Source: Bugula neritina
Lineage: Eukaryota > Animalia > Bryozoa
Reading direction: 5' to 3'
Assembly (NCBI GenBank): GCA_964035545.1
Contig: OZ037766.1
Location: 17,447,081-17,511,080 of the forward strand
Length of the DNA: 64,000 nucleotides
Shown: one piece after another, positions 927 to 54,300 of the stretch
Numbering within the stretch: the stretch's first letter is position 1
How the letters are laid out: each line of letters begins with the position of its first letter
The notes under the pieces: model-generated
Told to the model about the DNA's origin: nothing
The model's database searches: none
The model's input: only the letters and a program-made list of their open reading frames with translations
Translations under genes and position numbers: made by a program

Positions 927-3900
927 ATGGCGTTGTTGGAGAGAGTGACACAGATGGGTAAAGATCTTGGATTAGTGGAGGACAAGCTTGTAGCTTTTGT
1001 TGAAAAGAACTTACCCATTGTTGCTGCACAAGAGGAAAAAGAAAAGGACCGAGAGGAGCGTAGATTAGAGCGTGAGGCAGAAAAGATCAGGCAAGAAAAT
1101 GAGAAAGCCCTAATGGAGATGAAGATAAAAGCTGATCAGGAGGCAACGGCATTCAAGGTTAAAGCTGATCAGGAGACAATGGCACTCAAGATAAAAGCTG
1201 ACCAGGAGGCAGAAGAGAGAAGACAACAACATGAATTAGATATGGAAAAGCTGAAAGCTAACACAAGTTTGGAGCACTCAAGACATGAGAGCACCAGGTT
1301 AGAAATAGCTAACAAACCAAAACCAAAAATACCATTCTTTGATGAGAAGGTGGATGAAATGGATAGCTATTTAGAGCGGTTCGAGTGGGTTGCCGAAGGA
1401 TGTAACTGGGACAAGGGAGATTGGCCCTACCATCTCAGTCAGTACCTAAGGGGTACAGCAACAGAAGCTTACATCCGGTTGTCACCTACCGATCGTAGAG
1501 ATTATAAAAGAGTCAAAGAAGCCTTGTTGGAGCGCTTTAACTTGACTCAAGAGGGCTACAGAAAAAAGCTCAGAGAGGCAGAAGCTTACGAGGATGAAAC
1601 TCCTGCCCAACTATTCACTAGGATAGAAAGTTATGTGCACAAGTGGGTGGAGCTTTCAGGGGGCATGGACATAGCCAAACTAGTGGCGACTGAACAATTT
1701 ATATCATCATGCCCAGACGACCTAGCTGTGCATTTAAAGCAAAATTCCTACAACAGCAGTGAGGATATGTGTGATGCAGCGTCACTGTTCTTGCATGCTC
1801 GTGGAAGAAAACTAGCAAAGACTAAGAAAACTAATACAAAAAGGATGGAAAACACACCCGCCGGTAGCACGAATGCTGAACAAGGAAGTAAAAGCGATGG
1901 TGCATGCTTCATCTGCAAAGATAAGTCACACATTGCTCGTAACTGCCCACGGCGAGCCAAGAAGTACTGTTCACATTGCAAGATGAACAACCACAATACT
2001 TCAGACTGCAGAAAGTATGGTGGAAGGTCAGTGCATGCTGCTGCTGCAATAGCGACTACTCAGAATAAGACTGGGGTCACAGATCCAGGAATCTCATCTA
2101 AAGTGGAAGAACCTACGGAAATCACAGTTAATGGTAAAAAGTTTGTCAACGCTGCTGTCTGCAAGAATGGACCTAAATTCAAAGATGGGGGCACAGCGAT
2201 ATTTGATGCGGAAGTTAATGGCCAACGAGCTACTGTAATGCGCGACACCGGCTGTGGTTGCATTGTAGTCAATGCAAAGTATGTGCAACCTCAACATTTA
2301 ACTGGAGAATCAGTTTATCTGAATATGGCTGATGCAAGTGTTAGGGAGGCTCAATGGGCACTTATCTCAGTACGCTCACCATTTTACAATGGTGTCGTCA
2401 AAGCTGCAGTAATGGACAAGACGATTTGTGACCTGCTTATTGGGAATGTGGATGGAGCGAGATTAGCTGACCAGCCGCTGGAAAACTGGAAGGACTGCGC
2501 CGTGACCACAAGAGCTCAAGCTGTCAAGGAAAAGTCAGGAGACAAACCACTGATGATTGATTCAAATGCTAACCCATTAAGTATAGGGAAAGATGAGATA
2601 GCCAGACTGCAGAGGGATGACCCCACATTGGAACGTTTCTTCGATGCAAAAGAAGTGAAGGAGAAAAAGGGATGCACCACTAGGTTTGTGGTGAGGAATA
2701 AGATTCTGTACCGTGAGTACACCGACTCGAAGTCTGCCAGTGTAAAACCTGTTAAACAACTCATGGTACCCAGTTCTCTGAGGAAGGAAGTTCTACAGAA
2801 AGCTCATGACTGCATAATGAGCGGACACCTAGGAGTAAAGAAAACCACTGATAGAGTGCTTTCCAACTTCTTCTGGCCAGGACTAAACGGAGATGTCGTA
2901 CGTTTCTGTCAGTCATGTGACATTTGCCAGAAGACGGTGAAAAAAGGCTCAGTCATGAAAGTTCCAGTACAGGAAACTCCACTAATTGACACCCCATTCA
3001 AGAGATGTGCAATAGACCTAGTCGGACCAATTAACCCTCCAAGTGAGAAAGGACACCGCTACATCCTAACTTTAGTTGACTATGCTACAAGATACCCTGA
3101 AGCTACACCATTGAAGAATATTGACTCAGCTACTGTAGCTGAAGCGCTGCTTGACATATACAGTCGTGTTGGGATACCAGAGGAGGTGATAAGCGACCAA
3201 GGAACTCAATTCATCTCGGACTACATGAAAGAGTTTACCAGATTACTTGACATGCGACAACTTCCTACCTCACCATACCATGCAATGGCCAATGGACTTG
3301 TGGAAAAGTTCAACGGAACCCTCAAGAGTATGTTAAAAAAGTTGTGTGCTAAAGAGCCAAGACAGTGGCATCGATTCATCAATGCGGCTCTATTTGCATA
3401 TAGAGAAGTCCCACAGGAATCAACAGGCTTCGCCCCATTCGAGTTACTCTATGGAAGAACTGTACGTGGACCAATGTACATCCTGCGACAACTTTGGACA
3501 AAAGAAGACACTGCCGATGAAGTCAAGACCTGCTATCAACATGTTTTTGAATTGAGAGAGCGTTTAGATGACATGATGGAAATGGCGCTAGCTTCGCTAA
3601 AAGACAGTCAAAAAAGATACAAACACTATTTTGACAAGAAAGCTAAGCAGAGAGACTTCAAACCTGGTGACAAAGTGCTCATTCTTCTACCTACAAATGG
3701 AAATAAATTGCTGATGCATTGGCAAGGACCATTCAATATTGAGGAGAAAGTCAGACTGAATGACTACATTATCAACATTAGAGGCAAGAGGAGAACATAC
3801 CATGCCAACATGCTGAAGAAATATTTTGAGCGGGAGACGCCTACCGACCCTATGACTGTCGGAGCTGTGATGACTCTAGATGCTGCTGGTGCTGGAATTA

Positions 3901-4067
3901 TTGATCACGATAAGGAAAGAGAAGAAAGCCAAGATGATTTGTTGGACCTGTACAGTAAGAAACAGCAGAATGATGAGATGGGCTATGTATTTACAGAACT
4001 TCAGAATCAAGGTGGAGTCAATCAAAGGAAAGGACAATGTTGGAGCCGATTATCTAAGCCGAATTGA
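927..4067 (+). CDS. Gag-protease-integrase polyprotein (1046 aa), no reverse transcriptase
   Basis: Coiled-coil N-terminus, capsid-like region (YLERFE...W), two CCHC knuckles (CFICKDKSHIARNC, CSHCKMNNHNTSDC), aspartic protease (RDTGC), integrase HHCC (AHDCIMSGHLG...CQSCDIC), DDE core (AIDLVGP, ISDQGTQF, NGLVEKFN) and GPY/F (WQGPF). No YxDD RT motif. Confidence 0.93.
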   Translation: MALLERVTQMGKDLGLVEDKLVAFVEKNLPIVAAQEEKEKDREERRLEREAEKIRQENEKALMEMKIKADQEATAFKVKADQETMALKIKADQEAEERRQQHELDMEKLKANTSLEHSRHESTRLEIANKPKPKIPFFDEKVDEMDSYLERFEWVAEGCNWDKGDWPYHLSQYLRGTATEAYIRLSPTDRRDYKRVKEALLERFNLTQEGYRKKLREAEAYEDETPAQLFTRIESYVHKWVELSGGMDIAKLVATEQFISSCPDDLAVHLKQNSYNSSEDMCDAASLFLHARGRKLAKTKKTNTKRMENTPAGSTNAEQGSKSDGACFICKDKSHIARNCPRRAKKYCSHCKMNNHNTSDCRKYGGRSVHAAAAIATTQNKTGVTDPGISSKVEEPTEITVNGKKFVNAAVCKNGPKFKDGGTAIFDAEVNGQRATVMRDTGCGCIVVNAKYVQPQHLTGESVYLNMADASVREAQWALISVRSPFYNGVVKAAVMDKTICDLLIGNVDGARLADQPLENWKDCAVTTRAQAVKEKSGDKPLMIDSNANPLSIGKDEIARLQRDDPTLERFFDAKEVKEKKGCTTRFVVRNKILYREYTDSKSASVKPVKQLMVPSSLRKEVLQKAHDCIMSGHLGVKKTTDRVLSNFFWPGLNGDVVRFCQSCDICQKTVKKGSVMKVPVQETPLIDTPFKRCAIDLVGPINPPSEKGHRYILTLVDYATRYPEATPLKNIDSATVAEALLDIYSRVGIPEEVISDQGTQFISDYMKEFTRLLDMRQLPTSPYHAMANGLVEKFNGTLKSMLKKLCAKEPRQWHRFINAALFAYREVPQESTGFAPFELLYGRTVRGPMYILRQLWTKEDTADEVKTCYQHVFELRERLDDMMEMALASLKDSQKRYKHYFDKKAKQRDFKPGDKVLILLPTNGNKLLMHWQGPFNIEEKVRLNDYIINIRGKRRTYHANMLKKYFERETPTDPMTVGAVMTLDAAGAGIIDHDKEREESQDDLLDLYSKKQQNDEMGYVFTELQNQGGVNQRKGQCWSRLSKPN

Positions 4068-4080
4068 CTCAGAATTTTAA
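3961..4080 (+). pseudogene. Out-of-frame remnant of the RNase H C-terminus
   Basis: An alternative frame reads NSRMMRWAMYLQNFRIKVESIKGKDNVGADYLSR, the Ty3/Gypsy RNase H end motif (RW...LQ...GK.N..AD.LSR), followed by a stop and the PPT. Confidence 0.88.
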
Positions 4081-4126
4081 GTAGTTAGGAGAAATGATCA
4101 AGATAATTTCTCTTAGAATGGGGGGT

Positions 4127-4665
4127 TGTCACAAATTCTGAGTGTACATATACCTATAAATAGACTTACCGGGTTTTTCCTAATGATTATACAGGAATGT
4201 TCATAAATATTCTAGACTAATCAAAGAGATGGGTCATTGTTCATTGTTACTGTTTTCGTTAGTCATGTTAACTACTGCCCAGCAATGTAAACAAGGTATT
4301 GCGCAATAATTGCGAAATAACCATGGAAATTCCGATGTTTTGTTTTGTTTTGATTTTCTATAAATAGTATTGGCATGTGAGGAATGTTTTCTACTAGAAT
4401 CTTCTATACTGGAATGCTTGAGAATGTTCTAGAGTGTTTTGTTTACTATAAATACTGAGGCAGTTGGGTTTACGAATCAGTTCCTTTTTATAAGTCCATT
4501 CTTGGAGTTCACTCTTATAAGTTCATCTGTGCATATCTTACTGAAGAAATAAAGTCTACTCTATTTACTCTCAACTGGATTAGCAAGCTGTATGCTACTT
4601 GTCTCTATACTTCTGACTACCAGACTTTTCGAACTCGTCACACTGCTACCAACAGTTTTGTGACA
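4127..4665 (+). repeat. 3' LTR
   Basis: Preceded by PPT AGAATGGGGGGT; same sequence as 292-830; followed by TSD ATAAG. Confidence 0.97.
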
Positions 4666-4800
4666 ATAAGCATAACCCTATAGTAAGCACAGTACTACAT
4701 AAGCATATTATGTAGTACCATAATAAGCATCATATAATCAGCTGTGTTTGTGACACACTAGTAATATGACTATAGCACTATAGTACTATAGTGAAGAAGC

Positions 4801-5270
4801 AGCTGTAGTCTAAGGGCTATCGAGTGTTTCACTTAGCAAGCATGGCGTCATGGGTTCCAACCCCAGTAAAAGTCATTGCTGATGCTAGGAAGAGCATCCA
4901 CTCATAATTGCTCCTGTGCCGCATAAATGAATAAGTCCTTAGCTCGCTTTAAAAAATATAACTTTCCCATCATGCAGGTGTTTCTCACAATTTTAGGTAA
5001 AAATGGCACAGGTAATAATGACACGTCTAATAAGGGCACAAATGGAAAAGTAAGAAAAAATGGCACACTGATGTTAAACTTTTTCAAACCCCAAATCTGA
5101 ACCCCCATTTCCAAACCCAAACCCCCATCCTAAACACCTAAAGCCCACCTCAAACCCTAATATTAAAAATATGCCATTTTTACCTACTTCGCCATTTGTG
5201 CCATTATTACCGGTGCCATTTTTACCGGTCACCGTTTTTAACAGGATAGTGACTATAAACTTGCGTGAGT
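4801..5270 (+). mobile_element. tRNA-derived SINE-like element interrupted by a MITE
   Basis: A-box-like TAGTCTAAGGG and B-box-like GGGTTCCAACCC head; the body (AGGAAGAGCATCCACTCATAATTGCTCCTGTGCC...TTCTCACA|GGATAGTGACTATAAACTTG) matches the uninterrupted copy at 23015-23145. Confidence 0.65.
4996..5234. mobile_element. MITE with tandem-repeat subterminal inverted repeats (Mutator/Phantom-like architecture)
   Basis: GGTAAAAATGGCAC...GTGCCATTTTTACC inverted ends, right terminus GGTCACCG, imperfect 9-bp flanking repeat TTTCTCACA/TTTTTAACA. Confidence 0.7.
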
Positions 5271-6066
5271 TACTATAACACTATAGTCACATAACCAGTG
5301 TATTAAGAGGTTTCTTTTTGGAGATTTGTGATAAACACAACGCCTTCTTTACTTAACTTGACAGAGAAAGAAAGAAAGCATATCTCCTCAAACTTTTAGT
5401 GTTACTTTAAGCTGTTTAGTAGTGCTGTCTACTACTGCAACATTTTTATAAACTCCTCCAGATACAGTCAACAGTACAGTGCTCCAAGATTTATTTTCAG
5501 ACATAACTAAACATGCAGCAATGTAATTAATAATTGTATCTCATAAGGAACTGCTGCATTACATTCTCATACATTTGGGGGTTAGTCTTATATTCTGAAA
5601 AGCAAGATATTAGTTCAAAATGTGGTATGCTCACGACTATGGCAGAGGATATCAATATTATTTTTATATACTCTCTGTAGCTTCAAGATACTTAAAGATT
5701 CTATTATTCATAACATATGTGAGCTGTTAAAAATTGAGTTGTGTCTGATAAAAGACCTAATCCGATAAAATTTTATTGATTAAATGGAGCGTAAATTGTT
5801 CTAATATGATTGATTCATGTTTTCCTTTTTAACTTCTAGCGTTGTGAGTTTTAGATCTATGCAATGCGTCTAAGTACGTACGTATGTATGTACGAGTACA
5901 TATATATATAGCCCTATGTACCCTACAATGTTTTATATCTGAAACTTAAACTTAAACTGCTATAATGCTTTGTATTTAGCTTAAATAACAGTGCTTAAGT
6001 TGTGCATTTAGTAATATCCCATAATTATGCTTGAAATAATCATACTAAATTTGTCTTTAATTTCAG

Positions 6067-7494
6067 ACCTATCATCTATGTGTCAAGGAGTATATGGCTA
6101 AAGGCAGAGATGGTTATGCTATGTTAATAGATTGTCCAGTTATAGTTGGAGCTCAATCAGGCCTGGTTCTCTCTACATGTTTACAAAACTTTTTTGAAGG
6201 AAGTCTGCGTCCTTGCAAGTCAAGAGGCTGTTTACACAGGTATGATTCATGTTGTTCAATTACAGTAAGCTACTTAAACAGAATGCTAACAATCTGTATC
6301 ATGTTGTGATATAATTATTTTCTTATTTTACTATGTTTGATTAGGATAATATGACTCTTTTTTGCTTTTTAATCTTCAATGTTATCCACAATATATTGTC
6401 TTTTACCATCTCTTCTTTTCCTTGTACCTTCTACCTCTGCTTACAGTTTTTCACAAACCTTCCCTTCACTTATATGTTCTCTCTTTTTCTTTTCTGGCAA
6501 CTTCTTCACAACATTTTTTTTCACCCAGTACTCATCTCTCCTTAACACCATAAATCACTTTAGTCTAGACTTTTTCAACTTCATTTAAAATCTATCTATG
6601 CCTGTTGTTTATCTGATGAACTCTTTCTATTCCTTTCTATCCTTTGTGTCCTCATCACTTTCATATAGCTATAAGCCAAGATATTTTTGCAACTCTTCTA
6701 AATTATCCCTCTGCATTCTAGTTATTCCTAGACTCTACAATACTGCTGGCAAATATATACATACTTTCCCTTCAACTTAGCTGACACATTCTTACCATAT
6801 GTACTGCCTAAAAACATTGTTGATTCATTCTTTTCTAAACCTCTTGGCCTGCATGGCAGCTCAAAGTATCATAGTAAAAGGTATTTTTTTGTTTCCAGTA
6901 TATGGTTTAAAGCTTCCTTCTTATTCATAAATCACTAATCTAAGACTCAACAGAAATGCTGGGAAGCATTCTTCGCCTCCATAACACTGTTATATCAGCA
7001 AATCTAGTAGGATGTTCCATAGAAATTTATGTTTTGCTCAGCCAGTCAGTCAGTCTTTTAATGCCGCTAATAAAGACGGTGGTAACATATAAGCATTATA
7101 ATATAATTCATTTTAATAGTGTTTGCATTATACAAATGATATTAAAATGTGAAAAAAATTTTTTTGCAGCTACTATGTCAGCTAATTACAAATTTATTGA
7201 CAACAAATATATCTTTGAATGAGTGCATATAATCTGACATCACATTTTATTCAACCTGAGAGATGAGCCATTGTATTGCTAAATGATTTCATGTTACAAT
7301 TTACTTAATGTGTTCAAACTAGACGTAATATTCGTTTAAGTTTTTGTATTTACAGAGGTTGCAACAATGAACAAAATGATGCCATATCACATCACCAGCA
7401 AATGTTGTCACATGAATCTGAAACCAGAAAGATTCCTCCGGTGACGGGTAGAATTCGAAACACAAGCACCCCTAATCTTTTAAGAAGTTTTTAG
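6067..7494 (+). CDS. 5'-nucleotidase family protein, last two coding exons (upstream exons outside the window)
   Basis: Exon 6067-6239 (TYHLCVKEYMAKGRDGYAMLIDCPVIV...GLVLSTCLQNFF) and exon 7356-7494 (...RKIPPVTGRI...stop) have AG/GT sites and matching phase 2; motifs Y.A.G.DGY and P...GRI are typical of the 5'-nucleotidase C-terminal domain. Confidence 0.8.
6470..6800 (-). mobile_element. Degraded RTE-clade LINE 3' fragment in an intron
   Basis: The minus strand reads KNVSAKLKGK...EFIR*TTGIDRF*MKLKKSRLK*FMVLRRDEYWVKKML, resembling the RTE ORF C-terminus (RNE.IR...RLRWFGHV.RRD), with stops and frameshifts. Confidence 0.6.
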
Positions 7495-42300: not shown

Positions 42301-45300
42301 AACTGTATTTCCTTGTAAACTAATTCTATTAAACTTTTTTAGCGAACAGATTTCATCAAAATAATAAGAATATCTTTTGCAACCTTCCCACTTATCGAGA
42401 AACTATGGAAAAAATATCCTCTGTAGTACAGAAATGTGATAAAGATAGAAGTAAATCACTGAGTAAGGTGTTGCACTCTGAACTTGGGTAAGTGCTAATC
42501 AAAAAATTTACAAGTGCTTACATATTTAGTGCATAAGTTTTCCGTAGCAAAATAATTGACCATTGGATTGTATTAAAGTTGATTTATTAATGCTGAAAGT
42601 AACCAACCAACATAGAAATGAAAATGCTGTTTTTTAATTTTCTTTACTTGTAGTGGGGGTGCCAACATGCAAAAATGGGCGGGTGGAGCACATCAATACT
42701 AACCTTTGTTGCTATATATCACTGCAAAGCCAACATTCTACTGATCTCAGATCTGCGAGTACCTTTTTTGTATCTGGGGGGGTTCTCTCGTGAGAGGGGT
42801 GGATATACAGGAGTTCAGCATTTTTCAAGGGGGGACTATGGAACTCTAAATATTTAATTTTCTGAGTAGTTTAAGTTTGACATTAAAAATATTTTCAAGG
42901 AATGTTGTACACATATGTAACTTTCTCTAACAGAAGTTTTGACCAAAAATAAAAAAGTGGGCGGAGCCTATAATATGACAAACTACTTTTTTGCGTATAC
43001 CGGATATTCTCTAAACTGCTACTTTTCTGTTCTAGCATTTAGAATGTTGATTTTTGGTATGAAAATACTCTATTGTGTTCTAATAATGCTCCCCAATTTT
43101 TATTACGTTCTGAACTATATAACATCTTTCCCAACCATGACAAATAAAAAACATAAAACGGGAGTTATCTCCTCCGTTAAAAATTATTGCATTTCTACCC
43201 AATAATATTGCTCTTTGTTGATAGGAACAACATTAGCATAATAAAAATGTATTCTTAGTGTATTTATATTAGCTTATTGACTTATTTTGAATAATTGATT
43301 ACGATCAATACTATTAAGTATTAATATTCAATATTTACTGTATAAATTGAGTGTCAGCAATAATTAACAGACCACTAATATTCGATTTTTTTATTCACAA
43401 GTATAGTAACATAAAATATGGTTCATAAAAAAGTAATATTATGATTTCAGCATTACAAGCAATTACTATGCTCTTTTATATCAGATATTGGTAGACATTT
43501 GTAATTGTATTTATTTATAAATAAGATAGTATTTAAAATTTTAATTTACAATAGATCAAGCTTTATTACAAAGTTTTGTTATCTCTAGCGTTTATATACC
43601 AAATTAAATATATTATAATTCTTCATCGGAACTGTGTTTGTTGCCATCATCATCATAATCAGGCTCTTTGTTTGAAAAAGAAGACTGGCCACTTTTGTTG
43701 TTGCAATCGAAACATTCACATAAACCACAGCATTTCATCATCAGGCGCTTGCATTTGCATGCTTTACTCTTACAGCTTGCTTTTTTTGCATTTACATGCT
43801 GTTAAAATCACATCTGCGTTGCTCTCAAAATCATATTTTATCACAAAACTTAGTCAAGAGACATTGCTGAATATGAAAAAGTCACTTGAGGATTCATGTA
43901 ATCTAAATACAGCATGGCTATTGGCAAGACTTGCCCCAATCAAACTATTTCAATTGGACATAAGTCCTTCTACACATAACTGCCCCAGCTGGAGTAGCTT
44001 TAATGTAAGAAATTTGGTTGCCACAGAAGATAATAAAAGATCAGTCATTGGGTATTGCCCAATGATTAATGCACCATCAACAGATCCATCAACAATTTAT
44101 ACAATCCTTCTGCAGCTAAAGAAAACTATGAAAGTTTTAAATCAGAAACATTCAGTAATTACATTTGACCAAGCTATCTACAAGATTGCCAAAGAGATTC
44201 AATGGAAAAAACCAACTGAATTTTCAAACACAATAATTCGAATGGGCGGTTTTCATATCTTGATGAATTACTTGGCAGCACTTGGCAAAATGGTAAAATC
44301 AAGCGGCCTCGCCCAAGTTCTTGTACACAGTGATATATATTCTGAAGTTACAGTGAAACAGGTGCTATGTGGTAAGCATTATAACAGAGGTGTACGGGCA
44401 CACGAGATTTTGTATGAGGCAATATCAAGGCAGAGACTAAAATCTCTTTCGGAATGGCTTCAATAAAATGATCAGTTTGACCCATTAGAGTCTCATAATA
44501 CGTATTTCTATTGATGATAACTTGCGTGAATGGACCACTGTTGCAGATAAAGTTGCTACTGCTATAAAAAAGTTTGATTCTCATACTAAATTAAAATCTA
44601 ACCTTTCAATGTTCTGGAATTCCTACCTTCATGCAGTAGAAGCCATGTTGGGATTTATTCGAGCTGAGCGTAGTGGCAACTGGCAATTATATTTGGACAG
44701 TATGCAGGCAATGCTACCAGTATTTTTTGCGTATGATCGCACAAACTACTCAAGGTGGCTGCCTATATACCTTATTGATATGCTAAATTTGCCTGAATCT
44801 GCTCCAGAAGTTTATGGAATGTTTGCAAAGGGTTCATTCACCGTAAACAGGACAGGAAAAAAAATTGCAGGTATGGCTCCAGATCAGGTCTTTGAGCAAA
44901 CTTTGAACTGAGACAGTAAAACACCTGGAGGCATTATTGGCATTAGCAACCATGAAGAAGCTCGGACAAAATGGTTCTTAACTAGTCATATCAGAGCCCA
45001 ACTGCTTTCTTTGCAAAAGGATTTTTGCCAAATAGCCTCACAGTCATCAACACTACACAAGGAAGACACAATCATTACAACTATGACGGATGAGATTGAT
45101 ACACAAGCAATTCTTTTTACGTTGCAGCAGTTTGATGTTAAGTTGTTTAGCAATACTTCAACTGAACTTATTAATATTGCTACTGGAGTAAGTCTCGATG
45201 CAGAGACCTTCTTGTCAATAGTGACTGGTATGGCTCAGGGAGGAGAAATGGCTCAAAAGTTTTTTCAAGATAGACTTTTAAATACAATAAAACCATTAAT

Positions 45301-48300
45301 TTTTACACTGCTATTCACCGGCTTAAAATCTCTTCCTTTGACTTTGTGGCTAAATCACTTCAATCGGCCATTAAACCAAATGTTCCTAAAATATCATTTG
45401 CTAAACTTCTCATAAGTGCCAAAAGTGTCAAAGATTTGCATACAGTTCTAGAGAAAGAAATTGGTCCCATTCCTCTTGCTCTATTTACTGAAAACGGACA
45501 GATGAGAAAAACATGCAAATTGCAACTAATGCATATTTTGGAACAGAAATATCTTGGAAACAGGGTCTCCAATGATGATAGTCAACTGTCCACCAACAAA
45601 TCGATCATTATTGATGGTATGTGCATACTTCACTCGACAAAAACATCAGGCACTTTTTACAGCTATGCTCTGAAGATGTTGGAAATATTTCTTGAATGTG
45701 GCAAAGGATATACAAGGGTTGATGTAGTGTTTGACGTGTATTCTGAAACATCAATTACAGCACAAGAGCGTATTAGACGGGGTGCCCAATAGATGTGCTC
45801 TATTTCCATTATTCATAACAACCTGCCTGTTCCCAAAAACTGGAGTGCTTTTCTGAGCAATATTCACAACAAAAATGAGTTGGTAGATTACATAGTGAAG
45901 GTGCATGGAGTAGACATATTGAGAAAATTCCAGCTGGTACATTTTTAGTGTGTAGCGCCAAAGAAGTCTGTGTTCTGCAAAACCATTATCGTTAAAATTG
46001 TAACAAATTGAAATCCAATCATGATGAAGCAGACACGAGATTAATCCTTCATGCAGCTGATGCACTGAGTGATTACGATTTGGTAGTAATAAGATCAGTA
46101 GATACCGATGTTGCTATTATTGCGCTTAACATCATCTTAGTAATGTTTTAACTGAGCAGGCTAATAAAGATGTAGTAATCTTCGTTGGAATGGGGAGTCA
46201 CAAAAGATATATATCTCTTTTTGAATCAGCCAAAAAAATCTACAAAAATTTCTCAAGAATCTATTATCACTCCATGCATTTACAGGTTGTGACTCAGTAA
46301 GTTCTATCTTCCGAATATCTAAAAAGCGTGCTTTGGAGGTACTTGAAAAGGAAAGCTATAATCTGTCTTTAGGTTCTGATGATTGGTCCCCAGTATCAGA
46401 AGAAACATACTTAGAGTGTGAATGATTTGTCTCCAACCTATATGGTGCCTATGATGATATCACTGAAGCAAGATATAAAATATTGGCTTTAAAAAATGTC
46501 TCCAGTGAAGCACAGCTACCACCTAGTAGGAATTCCCTAGAATATCACGTGAAACGAGCCAATTATCAAGTTACACTTTGGCAACTTGCTTTTACACCTA
46601 TTTTACTTCATCAGCCAATTTTTGACCATGGTTGGGATACTAACTTGACTCCAATAAAATATGATTTTGAGAGCAACGCAGATGTGATTGTAACAGCATG
46701 TAAATGCAAAAAAGCAGGCTGTAAGAGTAAAGCATGCAAATGCAAGCGCCTGATGATGAAATGCTGTGGTTTATGTGAATGTTTCGATTGCAACAACAAA
46801 AGTGGCCAGTCTTCTTTTTCAAACAAAGAGCCTGATTATGATGATGATGGCAACAAACACAGTTCCGATGAAGAATTATAATATATTTAATTTGGTATAT
46901 AAACGCTAGAGATAACAAAACTTTGTAATAAAGCTTGATCTATTGTAAATTAAAATTTTAAATACTATCTTATTTATAAATAAATACAATTACAAATGTC
47001 TACCAATATCTGATATAAAAGAGCATAGTAATTGCTTGTGATGCTGAAATCATAATATTACTTTTTTATGAACCATATTTTATGTTACTATACTTATGAA
47101 TAAAAAAATCAAATATTAGTGGTCTGTTAATTATTGCTGACACTCAATTTATACAGTAAATATTGAATATTAATACTTAATAGTATTGATCGTAATCAAT
47201 TATTCAAAATAAGTCAATAAGCTAATATAAATACACTAAGAATACATTTTTATCATGCTGATGTTGTTCCTATCAACAAAGAGCAATATTATTGGGTAGA
47301 AATGCAATAATTTATAACGGAGGAGACAACTCCCATTTTATGTTTTTTATTTGTCATGGTTGGGAAAGATGTTATATAGTTCAGAATGTAATAAAAATTG
47401 GGGAGCATTATTAGAACACAATAGAGTATTTCATACCAAAAATCAACATTCTAAATGCTAGAACAGAAAAGTAGCAGTTTAGAGAATATCCGGTATATGC
47501 AAAAAAGTAGTTTGTCATATTATAGGCTCCGCCCACTTTTTTATTTTTGGTCAAAACTTCTGTTAGAGAAAGTTACATATGTGTACAACATTCCTTGAAA
47601 ATATTTTTAATGTCAAACCTAAACTACTCAGAAAATTAAATATTTAGAGTTCCATAGTCCCCCCTTGAAAAATGCTGAACCCCTGTATATCCACCCCTCT
47701 CACGAGAGAACCCCCCCCCAGATACAAAAAAGGTACTCGCAGATCTGAGATCAGTAGAATGTTGGCTTTGCAGTGATATATAGCAACAAAGGTTAGTATT
47801 GATGTGCTCCACCCGCCCATTTTTGCATGTTGGCACCCCCACTATTGGTAAAGTTTTACAAAAATACCAAGTTATAGTTTTGCTTTTATGACCTGAATTT
47901 TAATTCAAAACTGGCCACACTGTCAGTAAATGATTATGAGTTTACTATTATTGCTAAATTGACTGCTACGTTGACTCAGTAACTTGGTTGGTCGAAGGGA
48001 ACCATTTTCGTGCCGACTTTAGCTCTACAGCTTGTGTAATATTGTTTAACTTCTGCATATTTGACGTGGCTGTTGCGATCCCTAGCTTGCATTATGGCTA
48101 TCCTGGTGATATGGTGGCAATTAAAGCAGTATTCATTGTTTTATTTTATTATTTTTAATAAAGGTTACTAGCACTGTAATACTTATCAAAAGCTGAAGTT
48201 GAAAGCTCCGTTGAAGTTATTTTGTTACCAGCTAAACCAACTCTATGATACGTTGTTTTAGGGAATTGAAGTACAGTATTTCTTTCACTCCAGACACATT

Positions 48301-51300
48301 GAGCTACCTTACCAGCTACCTATCTGTGAGTTTTTACAACATTATCAAATATTGTTAGAATAAATACAGTGTTATTACATATATTTCCCCTATTTCACTC
48401 TCCGACTAGCATTCTTAAAATGCTTGCTGTAACACTAAATATGCATTATAATGATGCAAGTGACATATTTATCCTATAAGTACCACACTATCCTGTACTT
48501 CTTAGCTGCTTGTTTGCTATATGATAAAGTTATGTACCGTAAAATCGGGTAACATTGGCCGTTTTGAGACATATTTTGGGTGTCATATGAAAGGATTACA
48601 ATATTCTTCAAAATTTTTGGATGCTAAATGAAGCTTATCAACATATGCACTAAATGAAAGAACCATTTGCAGTTTGGGACTGCTAGATCTCCTGTGGCAT
48701 TAAAAAAAGTAGGTGGCCAAAGTTACCCTATTTTCGGGGTAACTTTGGCCGGTGTCGTTATTCTCCATGTAGCTAAAGTTAGCAGCACTTGGAGCTTTTT
48801 TAGCCAGTTAGAAATTAAAGAACAACATTATTCAACTTCATTACTACAAAAAAAAATTATTTTAGACAAAATGCAAGCTATAATAGTGTAATTATTGCAT
48901 TGAAACCACAGTTATTCGAGATACATTGTTATTAAGTGTAAAAACTTTTGTATATGTATAAAAAATCATGTGATTTGCTGGCAACATTGAATAAATCACT
49001 GTACAAGTTCAAATTTCATTGAATTTAATCTTAAATTCAAGTATGCCCTTTCAAACTATAGGCTGTAGCAGTTGTCTGTAGATTTTTTAAATAATGCGTA
49101 ATGTCTTCAGAATTAACTGTTGCCCATTCCGGTGCTATGTTTTGGCACAACCTGTGAGACAAGCTATCTTTATGTCTTGACATAAAACTGAGACTCCAGT
49201 GATCTTGAGGGTAGTTGCTTTTGAAATGTTGTACTCTTCTCTCACATTTGTCAAAATAGGTCTTGACTATTATTCGAAAGTCTGTTTTATCCAATGGAAA
49301 GCCCCATTGAGCCAGCTTTGTAGTAGGTATGGTCAACAATGGCTACCTCCTCTACTTGTGATAACACAGTTTGGCGTCCAGGCTTCAGCTTGTGTCTTCA
49401 TGCGGCTCTGTTTTGTAGTGTTCCTTTGGTAATATCATATTTCTAGCCACTTCTTGTCAAGACTTTCCAGCTGCCAATTCTTGTGAATAAAGCAAAACCA
49501 ATGATCTCCTCAGATATACCATATCTTGGAGATATTACTTTTCTTTAATATTTTCTGAGTATAATTGTCTTGAAAAATACATTTTACAATGCATGGTCAA
49601 ATTCTTATATAAAAAAAAACATTAAACACAAAATTGCTGTCTGGGAACAAAAATGCATAATTCCCCATGTAATTATTTCATATTTCGGACTCTTAAGTTG
49701 TTTCAAATATATAACTAAAGCATTGGGTATAGGTGAATCAAATGATTGTGCCTTTAGAGAGTAATGTACTATGTGTCTGAAGTAACAGAAAATTCGCAGC
49801 GCTGCCAGAAACCTACTTTGGAGTACCATTTAGTCATGGCCAAAGTTACCCCAAATTCGTCAAAAATTGTACACAGTGAATTCAAGACACATATTTTAAT
49901 TTTGGATTTCAATTTATTTACCTAAATTACAAATATCCTGGTTAAATACTTACCAAAGTTCTTTAATACAAAAAAGAAAATGAGTCCAGCTTTTCTAATG
50001 CCTTCAAATAGATTAAAGTTGGACAGCGCTGAAAATCTTGTTGTCAAACAGGAAATTGAAAATGGCTGACAGCAAGAAGCAGCAAATAAGTATATCAATT
50101 ATTTTTCAGGAATAGGATGCACCAATCTGCAGTCAGTGCATATATACAATTAAAATATCTTTAGACTTCATAGATATAGCACCAGCTACATTTTAAACAT
50201 TTTTTCCAAAGTGGCCAAAGTTACCCCAAGTGGCTAAAGTTACCCCATTTTACGGTACTATGTTGGCCACAGCTCTTCTTTCACTCTAATTTATTTTGTA
50301 CATTTATTTTTTTGTAGCGTGGGTCGAATTCTATGATATTACAAGTGTTCAATGCAAATATTGCCGTTGAAAGTGAGTGGTGCATTCAGTCATTAGTATA
50401 AATTTTAGCTCTAGTTATTGTCTGATAAGAAGCCCATAGCCAATGTACTAAGATCTATATCTTTAATATTTATTTTTGATATTGTTTAACCAGCATGCAG
50501 CTATAAAACTAGTGAGCAAATGATTTAGATTGAAATACAAGTATTACTCATGCATGAAATGACGAGTTCTTAGCTCAGAATTGTGCTGTTGCCTCAAATA
50601 GGTCTTCCACTTTTATCATGCCCTTATGTAGTTCTGCTTTTTAGCTCTTTCCTTGTCTTTTATAGTTACTACTGACAGCTCTCTAGAGCCTATTTACTCT
50701 AAAATGGACAAAGACAACTCCTCTGAAAGCAGTAGTGAAGCTATGGAGAAGCTTAAATCAGCTATAGAAGCTATGCAAGGTGTTGCCCCACCTCAACCTA
50801 GTATACGGCTTCATACCATCAGCTCTCAGTACCCAGGGTCAGTTGCAGTGTTGGAAATATCTGCTTTCCATTTGTTTTAGATGAATATTTAGCACCAGAC
50901 AGACTTGAGTATGAAATATATTTCAGTTTGTTTTTTGTTGTACATTAGGCTATTGTTGAAGTTTTTTGGATACTCCATTGTTTGCTATTTTATTTTGAGT
51001 TGTCATAGGTTCATGAAATTTTAAGGTGTAATAACTGCATGTATGATGCATCTTTCTGAATGAATTGATATGATTTAGGATTTGGTCTGAAAATTTGGCA
51101 GTTCTTGTGACACTGACTGGAGTGTCAAAATATGCTATTATCTTTTCCATAGCACAAAGTTGTGTCATCTACTTGAAACCTCACTTTGTATATTTTAGCT
51201 TGGTTTGTGGTCACGTGACTCCTAGATATTTGGTGCTGGGGTGTCAAGATTCTTCTCTACGCATGTTTAGCCGGACAGGAGGACAGGGTAAACGAAAGTC

Positions 51301-54300
51301 AAGTTTAGAATGTAAAGTTGAGGAGGGAGAATCCTCTTACCAGTTTAACATCTCTACAGTACCACTACAGGGCGACTTTCTGGAAGACATGGAGGATTGT
51401 GCTAAACTTAATCAGTTAGATATATATATTCTTTGTTTGAGTTTTAACTGTTGGCATAGATATTTTTGTTAGTATAAATTTTGGGTTACATAGTTGCAGT
51501 TGGAAATTGTTGGTTTAAATGCTAAAATTCACAATATAGTCGGTTCAATCTGAGTTGATATACTTAATATGTAGGCATCAAGTGTATCATTATTTTATTT
51601 AAATTTGTCTTAAATTTTGTTAGAAAGATCATGAAATAGCACTGGTTTGTATATTCACTGATGTTTGTTACTGCTATTCTTTTAGCACGCATAACACTGC
51701 ACAATGTGATACCCTGAGAGGCCATAGCTCCACTGTATATAGTATAGCCAATTTTGATGATTCTGATTACTTCATAACTGGGTCGGCAGATAAAACCAGT
51801 ATGTACAACTTTTCTCTTCTCCCATATTTTCAAATTATCTTATACATCTGAATTATTTGTTTGCTGTTTTGGGTTAGAGAAGAACATTTTGCTTGTCCTA
51901 TAGTAAGTTGTTTGTTTTCATCAGTAATTATTAAAGATTTGTTAATGGAGAATTATAAATTAATTTTTCTTACCTTGCTCTATTGGGTTTAGTTATTGCA
52001 TTTTACAATTTATTGAGCATCGTTTTATGACAATGATTTCTAATTCCATTGCTACCATATAAATGTCCTCCTGCTATCATGGCCGAAAGAGGAATATTGC
52101 TTCAATGTGCTTTCTCACATGCTTCACTAACTATTGCCATTTAAAGATCTAATCAATTTAATTAAAATTATCGCTAATGAAGACCAATTAAGTCTGGTCA
52201 AGATATCTCCACAACAAATTGAAATATTTTGAGTTGCATCAATATTCAACAACCACTTCATATACACTTGCTTTCCATGGATCGATCTCAGCGAGATCGA
52301 TCCATAGAAATCCGGCGATAATCTCACAACCACCTATGGTGTATAGAGTTTATATAATGTTCAGAATTGTATTATTTTGTCTGGGGAAAGGATAAGATTA
52401 AATACAAGCAAAATTAATGGATATGAAAATTTGTGGGATAGTTTTTACATGGAAAATGTAACTCCTTTTTGATAAATAGGACATACAGAATGTTAATAAT
52501 ACTCAGTGGAGGTAGTGTTGCTTGATGTGCCTCCTTTCTTTGTTAAGTTGTCATTCCTAAAGGAGAACTCAAATATGAAACACAATTTTATAAATGGGGT
52601 ATACCTGCAAGTTCTTTGGGCAAGAAGATAACTTTCATGTATTTTTGAGAGTTTGTAAGCCACTATCCTATTGTTTATAAAGTTCAACAATTGACCTGTG
52701 TTTCTAGCAACATTTGGGGTTTTTACTTTACACTGTATTAGTCATCTGTATTAGTCACCTATGTTGGCCATCTGTATTAGTCATACATATTAGTCATCTG
52801 TAATAGCCATTGAAAAAACTATTTGTGATACAAATTTAGATTAAAGTTATGGCAAGTTACAACATTTCAAGTTGTTATGTGATGATGAATATGGCTTGCT
52901 AAGCTTACTGATACTTCTTTTTGAGCATGTAGTAGTTTCAAGAGCTTGAAGAAGTCTCATTTCTTAATGTATATAATTATTTAAACTATTAGTTGTAGTT
53001 GTAATTAATGATTCAACAATTTTATACCTCATCAAGTTATTGCTGATTCCCGATGGTTTCATCAGTGAGTTTTGTCTCCTCTTTGCTCATCCAAGGTGCT
53101 GCATGCAAGTGCTCTGTTACCCAACAAAGTCATTATACAGCAGACAAATTCTATTTTCTTGTCTCTATTTAGTGACTGAATTTTTTGTAGTTCGTTTGTG
53201 GGACAGTGAGAAGTTAGTAAACAAAGTTATATATCGAGGCCACACGTTGACGGTTTGGTCTCTAGCAACAGCGTGAGTACAGTCAGTACAGTTGTATTTC
53301 TACGAGATTTGTGCTAAGCATGCGCACTAGTTGAAGTAAATGATAAATTTGTTAAATGATAACATACACTCTACTGACTGCTGACTTATTCACTAACACT
53401 TGGCCAATTATCTATTATATAATTAAAAATATTATGCTAGCTGTGACATCAGATGTCAGTTTTTCAAGTGGATCTGTCAAATAAATTGATTATTGCTGAG
53501 TAATTCTCCTTGGATGTTATACTAGTGATGTGAGTCACCAGTCTTGTTCTGAAGATGTTTTCTGTTTGTGCTCCTGAAACCTTTTAACTGATAGAAGCTA
53601 CACTTGTTTGCACATATAAGTTGATTGTGTGGTGGTTTTTAACTAACCATTACATATTAAATTGTATAACTGAAATTTACAAAAAAAGCAAGAAATGCTA
53701 TTCATGGCTCTAAAAATGGACATAGCATGTTGGCAGCATGTTACCTAGCAATATCTGAAGCTAAATCAATTGATCTGTAAACTTAGCAATAAAAGTTATC
53801 TTACTTTAACTGTGTCAAATAACTAGGAATTTCACTTGAAAACTTGATTTAAATTTATCTTATTCTCACCAATTGACTTCAACCATCAATGAACTCTCTG
53901 TTTTGCAGCCTGCATAACAATCTTGAAATAATGAAGGTAACAGTTTTAATAGCTTACTAATCCTGACTACAAAAATGCACGTAAACAACAGAGTCGATGT
54001 GCACAATGAGTAGCAGTGACTTGAAAAAAAGTTAAAATGTAGTTAAATTGAAATTGATGCAACTGAATCATTTCACCTAAAGTTGACACTACCAACTTCT
54101 GTTTTATTTTATATTTGTTCCAGATATAACGTCTTAGCTATAGTTCTTTCATAAAGAAACTACTATAAAACAGGTCATTTTAATTTTTTATTTAGCAACA
54201 ATAGAAAATATAAGTAGAAAAAGTAATGAAAGAATAGGAAAAAATAAATAATCAGTTTGAGTTTGATATAAAAACACTGCATTGCATTTTCACGTGTCAT

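Follow-up and report, generated by a model that had tools for sequence, protein, structure and literature searches.

A long-armed transposon of Bugula neritina, very probably a non-autonomous rearrangement derivative of a 6.6-kb element in the same genome

We analyzed a 64,000-nucleotide (nt) stretch of the Bugula neritina genome (assembly GCA_964035545.1, contig OZ037766.1, forward strand; G000:C2:17447081-17511080 in our numbering), referred to here as the window, and focused on a 5194-bp unit with long inverted arms at positions 42651-47844. This feature is very probably one young insertion of a non-autonomous rearrangement derivative of a 6.6-kb autonomous cut-and-paste transposon, the parent, that resides in the same genome, with a single origin, most likely by a process of the gap-repair type. 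The derivative has its termini in common with the autonomous element, lacks a functional transposase, and is present in at least 19 copies with target site duplications (TSDs). The window as a whole is AT-rich (~31-33% GC) and eukaryotic in character, with repeats of invertebrate type and no sign of human sequence.

Comparison of the element with itself by BLAST aligned 42651-43841 with the reverse complement of 46654-47844 at 98.49% over 1193 columns, in agreement with the initial annotation of this stretch, which had described a 1191-bp left arm that contains the Cys-rich codons, stop, and 3' flank of the right side. A repeat search recovered the inverted repeats as four gapless blocks, 94-99% complementary and together spanning 42642-43841 and 46654-47853, far beyond chance expectation. 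The two arms of ~1191 bp enclose a 2812-bp loop of transposase remnant, and the same TTG stands outside both ends, also as annotated. The element starts with TAGTGGGGGTGCC and ends with its complement; the termini read 5'-TAGTG...CACTA-3' (42651-42655 and 47840-47844), the mirror image of CACTA/EnSpm ends. The parts of the element, in which TIR stands for terminal inverted repeat and ORF for open reading frame, are as follows.

42648..42650, unstranded: left TSD, TTG; perfect 3-bp TSDs of differing sequence flank 19/20 independent insertions of the family.
42651..43284, plus strand: outer left arm, 634 bp, starting with TAGTGGGGGTGCC; the normal left TIR of the family, present in the parent too, where L037:740-1373 pairs with 6727-7360.
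43285..43841, minus strand: recruited left-arm extension, 557 bp, an inverted copy of 46654-47210 with no counterpart on the left side of the parent.
43613..43841, minus strand: inverted duplicate of the last 75 transposase codons and stop (Cys-rich CXC tail); the minus-strand ORF at 43613-43741 encodes the same peptide as the end of the ORF at 46483-46881.
43840..43841, unstranded: rearrangement junction with 2-bp AT microhomology, from a three-way comparison of the derivative junction, the reverse-complemented right arm, and the parent.
43842..46881, plus strand: truncated, decayed transposase remnant, parent codons 453-1462, from frame comparison with the parent, with domain positions taken from an 11-sequence alignment.
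46654..47844, plus strand: right arm, comprising 75 C-terminal codons, the stop at 46879-46881, and 963 bp of 3' flank that includes the normal right TIR (47211-47844), from the repeat and BLAST comparisons.
47845..47847, unstranded: right TSD, TTG, from flank comparison.

The first base of the right arm falls on a codon boundary in the frame whose stop is at 46879-46881, and the minus-strand copy in the left arm has its stop at 43613-43615. In the window copy, the coding stretch 43842-46881 is spread over three frames, with five frameshifting indels and five in-frame stops. This remnant retains the second Asp (~44170) and the Glu (~44895) of the likely DDE triad, the FEN/XPG-like nuclease region (~45440-46530), and the CXC tail.

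We searched the whole 216-Mb assembly with the 5194-bp unit as the query and found at least 19 full-length 5.2-kb copies, 95-99% identical, on contigs C1-C8, plus truncated copies. The same join was present in 17/17 copies in which the junction was read, three of them with 2-7 extra bases at the join; this count leaves out L016 and L017, where the junction search string was unmatched. Perfect 3-bp TSDs of differing sequence (TTG, TAT, TAA, TTA, AGC, ATA, CTA, TGA, ACT, TTC, and others) flank 16 of the 17 independent derivative insertions, as they do all three parent insertions scored. L015 stands outside this tally, as its first four element bases are absent and its duplication cannot be scored. 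The initial annotation had proposed that the element transposed as a long-armed unit and had looked to other copies with the 43841/43842 junction and different TSDs; such copies exist, and the proposal holds.

The only full-length, intact-ended copy without a matching TSD is L010 (G000:C6:12674799-12679977; TCT versus ATA), which may reflect inversion or ectopic exchange between two copies, by analogy with Galileo in Drosophila. L018 (C8:2313201-2318313) and L019 (C8:593615-598727) are 99.9% identical, lie 1.7 Mb apart in opposite orientation, and have identical flanks and TSD. Because the flanks are common to both, these are one insertion, seen twice through an inverted segmental duplication or redundant assembly, and not two insertions. 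The window copy is 99.3% identical to L002 and L003, which are identical to each other over 4 kb and occupy different sites, a mark of recent activity; the window copy is a young descendant and not the place of the original rearrangement. Among the shorter matches, partial copies lie 30 kb from L010 on the same contig (C6:12709201-12711637), and further deletions within the long-armed form gave L027, L028, L029 (C2:7699103-7702677), and L030 (C2:17732219-17734816); L029, for instance, runs from left-arm positions 1-963 directly into position 2568. The left arm of L020 is interrupted by 410 bp of inserted sequence, flanked by a 14-bp repeat.

Five matches start exactly at element position 1190. 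Four of these, on C3, C82, C9, and C1, share upstream sequence at 98.8-99.9% and have different right flanks. They are copies of a 6621-bp parent element (6614 bp for the C1 copy).

G000:C3:19735739-19742359 (L037:740-7360): parent C3, 1462-codon frame open.
C82:~421625-428245: parent C82, 1462-codon frame open.
C9:4654868-4661488: parent C9, 1462-codon frame open.
C1:19305868-19312481: parent C1, 1462-codon frame broken.

The parent TIRs are 634 nt long and 98% identical, and beyond ~634-640 the left and right sides are only 46% alike. From its left end, the parent consists of the terminal 628-634 bp, then 2.0 kb of parent-specific sequence, then sequence in common with the 5.2-kb form. Positions 1-628 of parent and derivative are ~96% identical, and the terminal 20 bp are identical. 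The recovery of this element and of its true left end, which the initial annotation had recommended, also corrects that annotation: it had taken the native left end to be missing and the element to have two right ends, but the parent has 634-bp TIRs, and only arm positions 635-1191 were recruited. In L037, the open frame occupies 2019-6404 (1462 codons). Its stop (6405-6407) lies 320 bp before the right TIR, so TIR and ORF do not overlap in the intact element. The three parent insertions with both flanks examined have the TSDs AAA, ATA, and TTA. The C3 and C82 parents are ~100% identical with different right flanks, and the sequences suggest very recent or ongoing transposition of this Academ-like parent. 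The 1462-codon frame is probably preceded by one or two short 5' exons; the homologues have a CxxC motif ~90 residues further upstream than the L037 frame. A short open stretch at L037:~1700-1810 (frame of 1301) has a C-x-x-C-type motif (...KCVYCC...) followed by GT, resembles the N termini of the homologues, and is a candidate 5' exon.

Two relatives from other sources have a comparable layout. L040, from a marine metagenome and with a protein 29% identical, has TIRs of ~510 bp that start with TAGT and an ORF (1543-6189) that ends ~800 bp before the right TIR. L038, the closer of the two at 49% identity, is represented by a Logan contig of 6346 bp. A 30-nt inverted repeat forms its two ends, as would be expected had assembly stopped where a long TIR meets the interior of the element, and its ORF is separated from the contig ends by 1431 bp on one side and 610 bp on the other. 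Long TIRs are thus a family trait, and TIRs that overlap the ORF are not. Such overlap in intact relatives is what the initial annotation had named as evidence against its own reading, and it is seen in none of the parent, L040, and L038.

Comparison of parent and derivative defines the rearrangement. The derivative keeps parent positions 1-~634 and 2637 to the end. The ~2 kb between them (~635-2636), which holds the 5' region and codons 1-452, including D378 and the N-terminal Cys/His region, has given way to 557 bp of sequence that also lies, in the opposite orientation, immediately inward of the right TIR. Arms of 634 bp thus became arms of 1191 bp. The transition at 43841/43842 is abrupt and corresponds to codon 452/453 of the 1462-codon parent frame; the initial annotation was correct both on this join to mid-transposase and on the missing N terminus. 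At the breakpoint, the arm ends with ...TTTTAT, the parent reads ...GGCAAT and then CACAAAAC, and the product reads ...TTTTAT and then CACAAAAC, with AT common to both. The outer breakpoint is invisible because it is located within the identical TIRs. In an alignment of 11 sequences, the parent frame plus 10 homologues from other sources, the parent is colinear with all 10 homologues through the junction, and the parent arrangement is therefore ancestral. A single rearrangement that joined mid-ORF to the inverted right side is thus the part of the initially proposed template switch or end replacement that stands; replacement of a whole end is not supported, as the outer 634 bp correspond to the normal left end. 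We also considered nested self-insertion and rejected it, as the junction lies 1191 bp inside the arm and not at a terminus.

Relative to the parent frame, and numbered within the ORF part common to both forms, a 2-bp insertion at nucleotide 2278 is present in every derivative copy. Most copies are also disrupted by an insertion at 2056 and by stops at 1945 and 2575; in the largest subgroup, 4 bp inserted at 657 and a stop at 625 come on top of these. In the ladder-like maximum-likelihood tree, the parents group in a single clade (100/100), the earliest branches are L015-17 and L013/14, and the window copy sits beside L002/L003. Because the lesions are nested and the tree is ladder-like, these data point to a single origin followed by serial non-coding master copies, which, being non-coding, would have been mobilized in trans.

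Internal-deletion derivatives are usually explained by gap repair with filler DNA, and we propose the following as the most likely course. Once, in a single ancestor, gap repair after excision would have been interrupted. A strand primed from the left flank would have copied the left TIR, dissociated, and re-annealed on the right TIR, which has the same sequence read inwards; it would then have copied 557 bp beyond the TIR edge before dissociating again. At the AT dinucleotide, it would finally have been joined to a second strand, whose synthesis had come from the right side of the element and reached codon 453. The product would have retained both normal ends, and the transposase of the parent could have moved it in trans. 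It has since spread to about 20 or more sites via successive "master" copies while its coding remnant decayed, with the likeness of its arms upheld by arm-to-arm gene conversion.

The arms show such concerted change. Within each of 19 derivative copies, the arms are 97.6-100% identical, and the copies differ from one another by up to 4-5%. Substitutions diagnostic of subfamilies (main group versus L015-17) are on both arms in 22/22 cases and on one arm only in none. Private substitutions are mirrored on both arms in 65 cases and found on one arm in 103; the window copy has no mirrored and nine single-arm substitutions. Arm-to-arm gene conversion appears to be the simplest explanation. The parents provide a further observation: in C3 and C9, 11 sites in TIR positions 212-439 differ between left and right, and the left arm of C1 has the right-arm state at all 11. 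In this C1 copy (L036/L025), a conversion tract of at least 230 bp is seen between the arms of a single element.

We then assigned the domains of the parent protein, which has an N-terminal Cys/His region, a DDE (RNase H-fold) core, a FEN/XPG-like nuclease, and a CXC tail, with no helicase domain. No Pfam match passed the threshold for the seven broken coding pieces, the intact parent frame, or any of the 11 aligned homologues; DUF6589 and TCR/CXC matched weakly below it. PDB sequences were searched with both the protein and a profile, and the sole result was a weak match of the CXC part to LIN54; in the tail, the likeness is to the DNA-binding CXC domain of LIN54/tesmin (TCR). A sequence search found 12 relatives of 985-1653 amino acids, 23-51% identical, in Logan, ENA, and JGI assemblies; relatives of 1434-1653 amino acids are among them. 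Look-alike clusters in the Atlas contain proteins of 1555-1628 amino acids, with Mollusca and Echinodermata as recorded taxa. In the 11-sequence alignment, D378-N-x-D381...H394, D562, and D799...E803 are invariant or nearly so, with D378, D562, and E803 invariant in all 11 sequences. The same is true in the nuclease region of D1042, D1082, D1181, D1204-T-D1206, and H1261...G1265-x-D1267, and a CxC-rich block stands at the end.

Residues 985-1345 gave an AlphaFold2 model with a predicted local distance difference test (pLDDT) score of 80 and a predicted template modeling (pTM) score of 0.80. Its Foldseek matches were EXO1, the T5 D15 flap endonuclease, XRN1/2, FEN1, and T4 RNase H (E 1.7e-4 to 3e-2, probability 0.97-1.0, template modeling [TM] score ~0.4), and the region is predicted to have the FEN/XPG 5'-nuclease fold. 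The core model (residues 255-960, 706 residues) had a pLDDT of 81 and weak Foldseek matches (Hermes, E 0.04). A second structural comparison matched it to the P-element transposase (Z 8.7, 367 residues aligned), Hermes (8.5), RAG1 (7.6), Transib (7.2), ISCth4 (7.2), and Mos1 (5.3). The top 26 entries are all DDE recombinases; the Z scores are moderate, and it is their consistency that makes the argument. In the model, D378 lies on strand 1, D562 just after strand 4, and E803 on the helix after a 200-residue all-helical insertion. This modeled layout is the arrangement of hAT, P, and RAG-type enzymes, and D378, D562, and E803 are likely the DDE triad. The P-element transposase is the top core match, yet hAT, RAG, and Transib are within 1.5 Z units, and the fold alone does not decide between them. 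To our knowledge, neither 3-bp TSDs nor an XPG-like nuclease is a feature of P elements, whose transposase lacks such a nuclease.

PMC10045372 separates AcademX elements, which have a nuclease with the transposase and TSDs of 3 or 4 bp, from AcademH elements, which have a helicase and TSDs of 9-10 bp. The Bugula element has the DDE core, the XPG/FEN-type nuclease, and the 3-bp TSDs of the former. Thus, the element is probably Academ-like, as judged by architecture and TSD length and not by comparison with reference Academ sequences; with that limit, the superfamily name given in the initial annotation is plausible.

The same final structure could have another origin, in which the whole left arm comes from a right end. 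Had two parents stood head to head, or nested in inverted orientation, a deletion that joined a point 1191 bp inside one right end to codon 453 of the other would yield an identical product, and the 2-bp junction microhomology is compatible with end joining. TIR position 75 and the inner edge at 629-640, which differ between left and right in all three parents, have the right-arm state in both derivative arms, also in favor of such a fusion. Few other sites distinguish left from right in the parents; in the derivative they show a mosaic of both states, conversion has altered them (one parent is itself converted), and they are uninformative on which end supplied the outer 634 bp: arm homogenization erased the left/right differences, and the markers of origin were lost with them. 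Fusion needs two events, an adjacent inverted insertion and a deletion, versus one repair event, and no head-to-head parent pair was found among the genome matches. We consider this route unlikely. Another objection is that long perfect palindromes are a known class of artefact, and no empty allele or haplotig of the window insertion site was found in the assembly, where both flanks are single copy. However, no fewer than 17 independent loci have this junction and arm structure, with private mutations and separate TSDs, and the window copy is nested in the family tree next to L002/L003. An assembly chimera or palindromic read artefact is vanishingly improbable, as is conversion in place at the window locus, which the initial annotation had kept as its alternative and which this recurrence excludes.

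The direction of change might also be reversed, with 1.19-kb arms that overlap the ORF end as the native state and the 6.6-kb form as secondary, given that the long-armed form is the commonest in the genome (at least 19 versus 4 copies). Yet the N-terminal 452 codons and the first catalytic Asp are present in the 6.6-kb form only and are colinear with the homologues of other organisms, the long-armed copies have frameshifts common to all of them, the ORF of L040 lies well inside its TIRs, and that of L038 lies at least 580 bp inside the contig ends; we regard this reversal as highly improbable. A last alternative concerns function. By analogy with maize Mu killer, the long-armed copies could be natural sources of hairpin RNA, in which read-through transcription would yield a 1.19-kb double-stranded RNA over the transposase 3' end and feed small-RNA silencing of the autonomous element. 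The geometry is suitable, with near-perfect 1.19-kb arms that include 228 nt of coding sequence and the 3' region around a 2.8-kb loop, and arm identity is upheld by conversion. However, homogenization is also seen in the non-coding TIRs of the parent, so no selective explanation is needed, and the autonomous element has apparently been active recently despite ~20 long-armed copies. Such a role is improbable, though if it were real, the family would correspond to Mu killer in a natural form that is both mobile and multi-copy, found in an animal and in a superfamily, Academ, that has received little study.

Several points weigh against our preferred account, in which interrupted gap repair in one ancestor gave rise to the long-armed family. 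Sequence alone cannot separate a template switch in the TIR from a deletion between two head-to-head copies. The present parent copies diverge 4-5% from the derivatives and are therefore sisters of the element that gave rise to the family rather than that element itself. We infer parent activity from identical copies and open frames, and "intact" covers only the 1462-codon open frame, with the start codon outside it. The superfamily label draws on architecture, moderate fold matches (TM ~0.4, Z ~8.7), and TSD length, and not on reference Academ sequences.

At the window locus itself, the six bases outside each TTG (CTTTAC and GTAAAG) are also mutually complementary. We rejected a palindromic flank as a feature of the family, as the other 18 perfect-TSD insertion sites have complementary bases at only 0-5 of 12 flank positions. 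We ascribe the complementary flanks of the window copy mainly to coincidence, together with a weak c|TWA|g preference in the choice of target. Pfam searches of three flanking ORFs (49040-49339, 51095-51469, and 53040-53273) gave no matches.

The structure is real and well explained, and it is an ordinary kind of transposon derivative. Its value is as a resolved example of TIR growth by the swallowing of internal sequence, with parent, product, breakpoint, and microhomology in one genome. A more useful lead than the foldback structure is the apparently live pair of autonomous and non-autonomous elements, with the 1462-codon frame open in three copies. We know of no member of the Academ superfamily that has been experimentally shown to transpose, and the Bugula pair is a candidate for the first such demonstration. 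By-products of the analysis are the structural domain assignment with its likely DDE triad and the evidence that transposon arms of 0.6-1.2 kb evolve in concert. For annotation, the copies should be masked as one repeat family and not locus by locus.

Among known systems, AcademX elements (Kapitonov and Jurka 2010; Kojima 2020, both as summarized in PMC10045372) resemble the Bugula element in having a large single protein with DDE transposase and nuclease, 3-4 bp TSDs, TIRs, and an animal host. A possible point of difference is the length of the Bugula TIRs, which at 634 bp are long. Academ elements are abundant in bivalves (PMC10294476), with which the presence of Mollusca among the look-alike cluster taxa agrees. 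The closest process is that described for Galileo of Drosophila willistoni, in which the final 69 bp of the transposase ORF (>500 bp in one copy) lie in the 3' TIR and are repeated inverted in the 5' TIR (PMC4168063). Galileo copies with extended TIRs have their own TSDs, and aborted gap repair with template switching has been invoked for defective and TIR-extended copies (PMC4168063). Its authors called the recruitment of an ORF end into a TIR unique to Galileo (PMC4168063). The Bugula family is thus a case outside the only group with such a report, and the claim of the initial annotation to a direct view of how foldback elements arise is weakened by this published precedent. Like Galileo, the Bugula element recruited an ORF end (228 nt) and 3' flank, and its copies have their own TSDs. 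Unlike in Galileo, the 5' 2 kb were lost along with the recruitment, which makes the product strictly non-autonomous, and both the parent and the exact breakpoints are recovered. [quoted passage not shown]

For maize Ac/Ds and MuDR and Drosophila P, interrupted gap repair gives internal deletions with short microhomology and nearby, sometimes inverted, filler, and the products are mobilized in trans by an autonomous partner. The Bugula derivative resembles these internal-deletion derivatives in its lost internal segment, short junction microhomology, and inverted filler. Unlike theirs, its filler is 557 bp long and contiguous with the TIR, and nearly doubles the arms rather than forming a small patch. 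Drosophila Foldback (FB) elements likewise have inverted arms that are very long relative to the element; however, FB arms consist of tandem subrepeats, and the Bugula arms are unique sequence (ORF end and 3' flank) around a loop of transposase remnant. Tandem Repeats Finder detected only three trivial 23-24-bp arrays in 42600-47900 and no arrays in the arms, and we rejected an FB-type foldback element on the absence of tandem subrepeats in the arms and the 2812-bp unique loop. Maize Mu killer consists of part of MuDR duplicated in inverted orientation and acts to silence MuDR. Like it, the Bugula derivative is an inverted duplication of part of the transcribed region of an autonomous transposon, from which hairpin RNA is possible in principle. 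Unlike Mu killer, which is a single non-mobile locus, the Bugula structure is a mobile multi-copy family.

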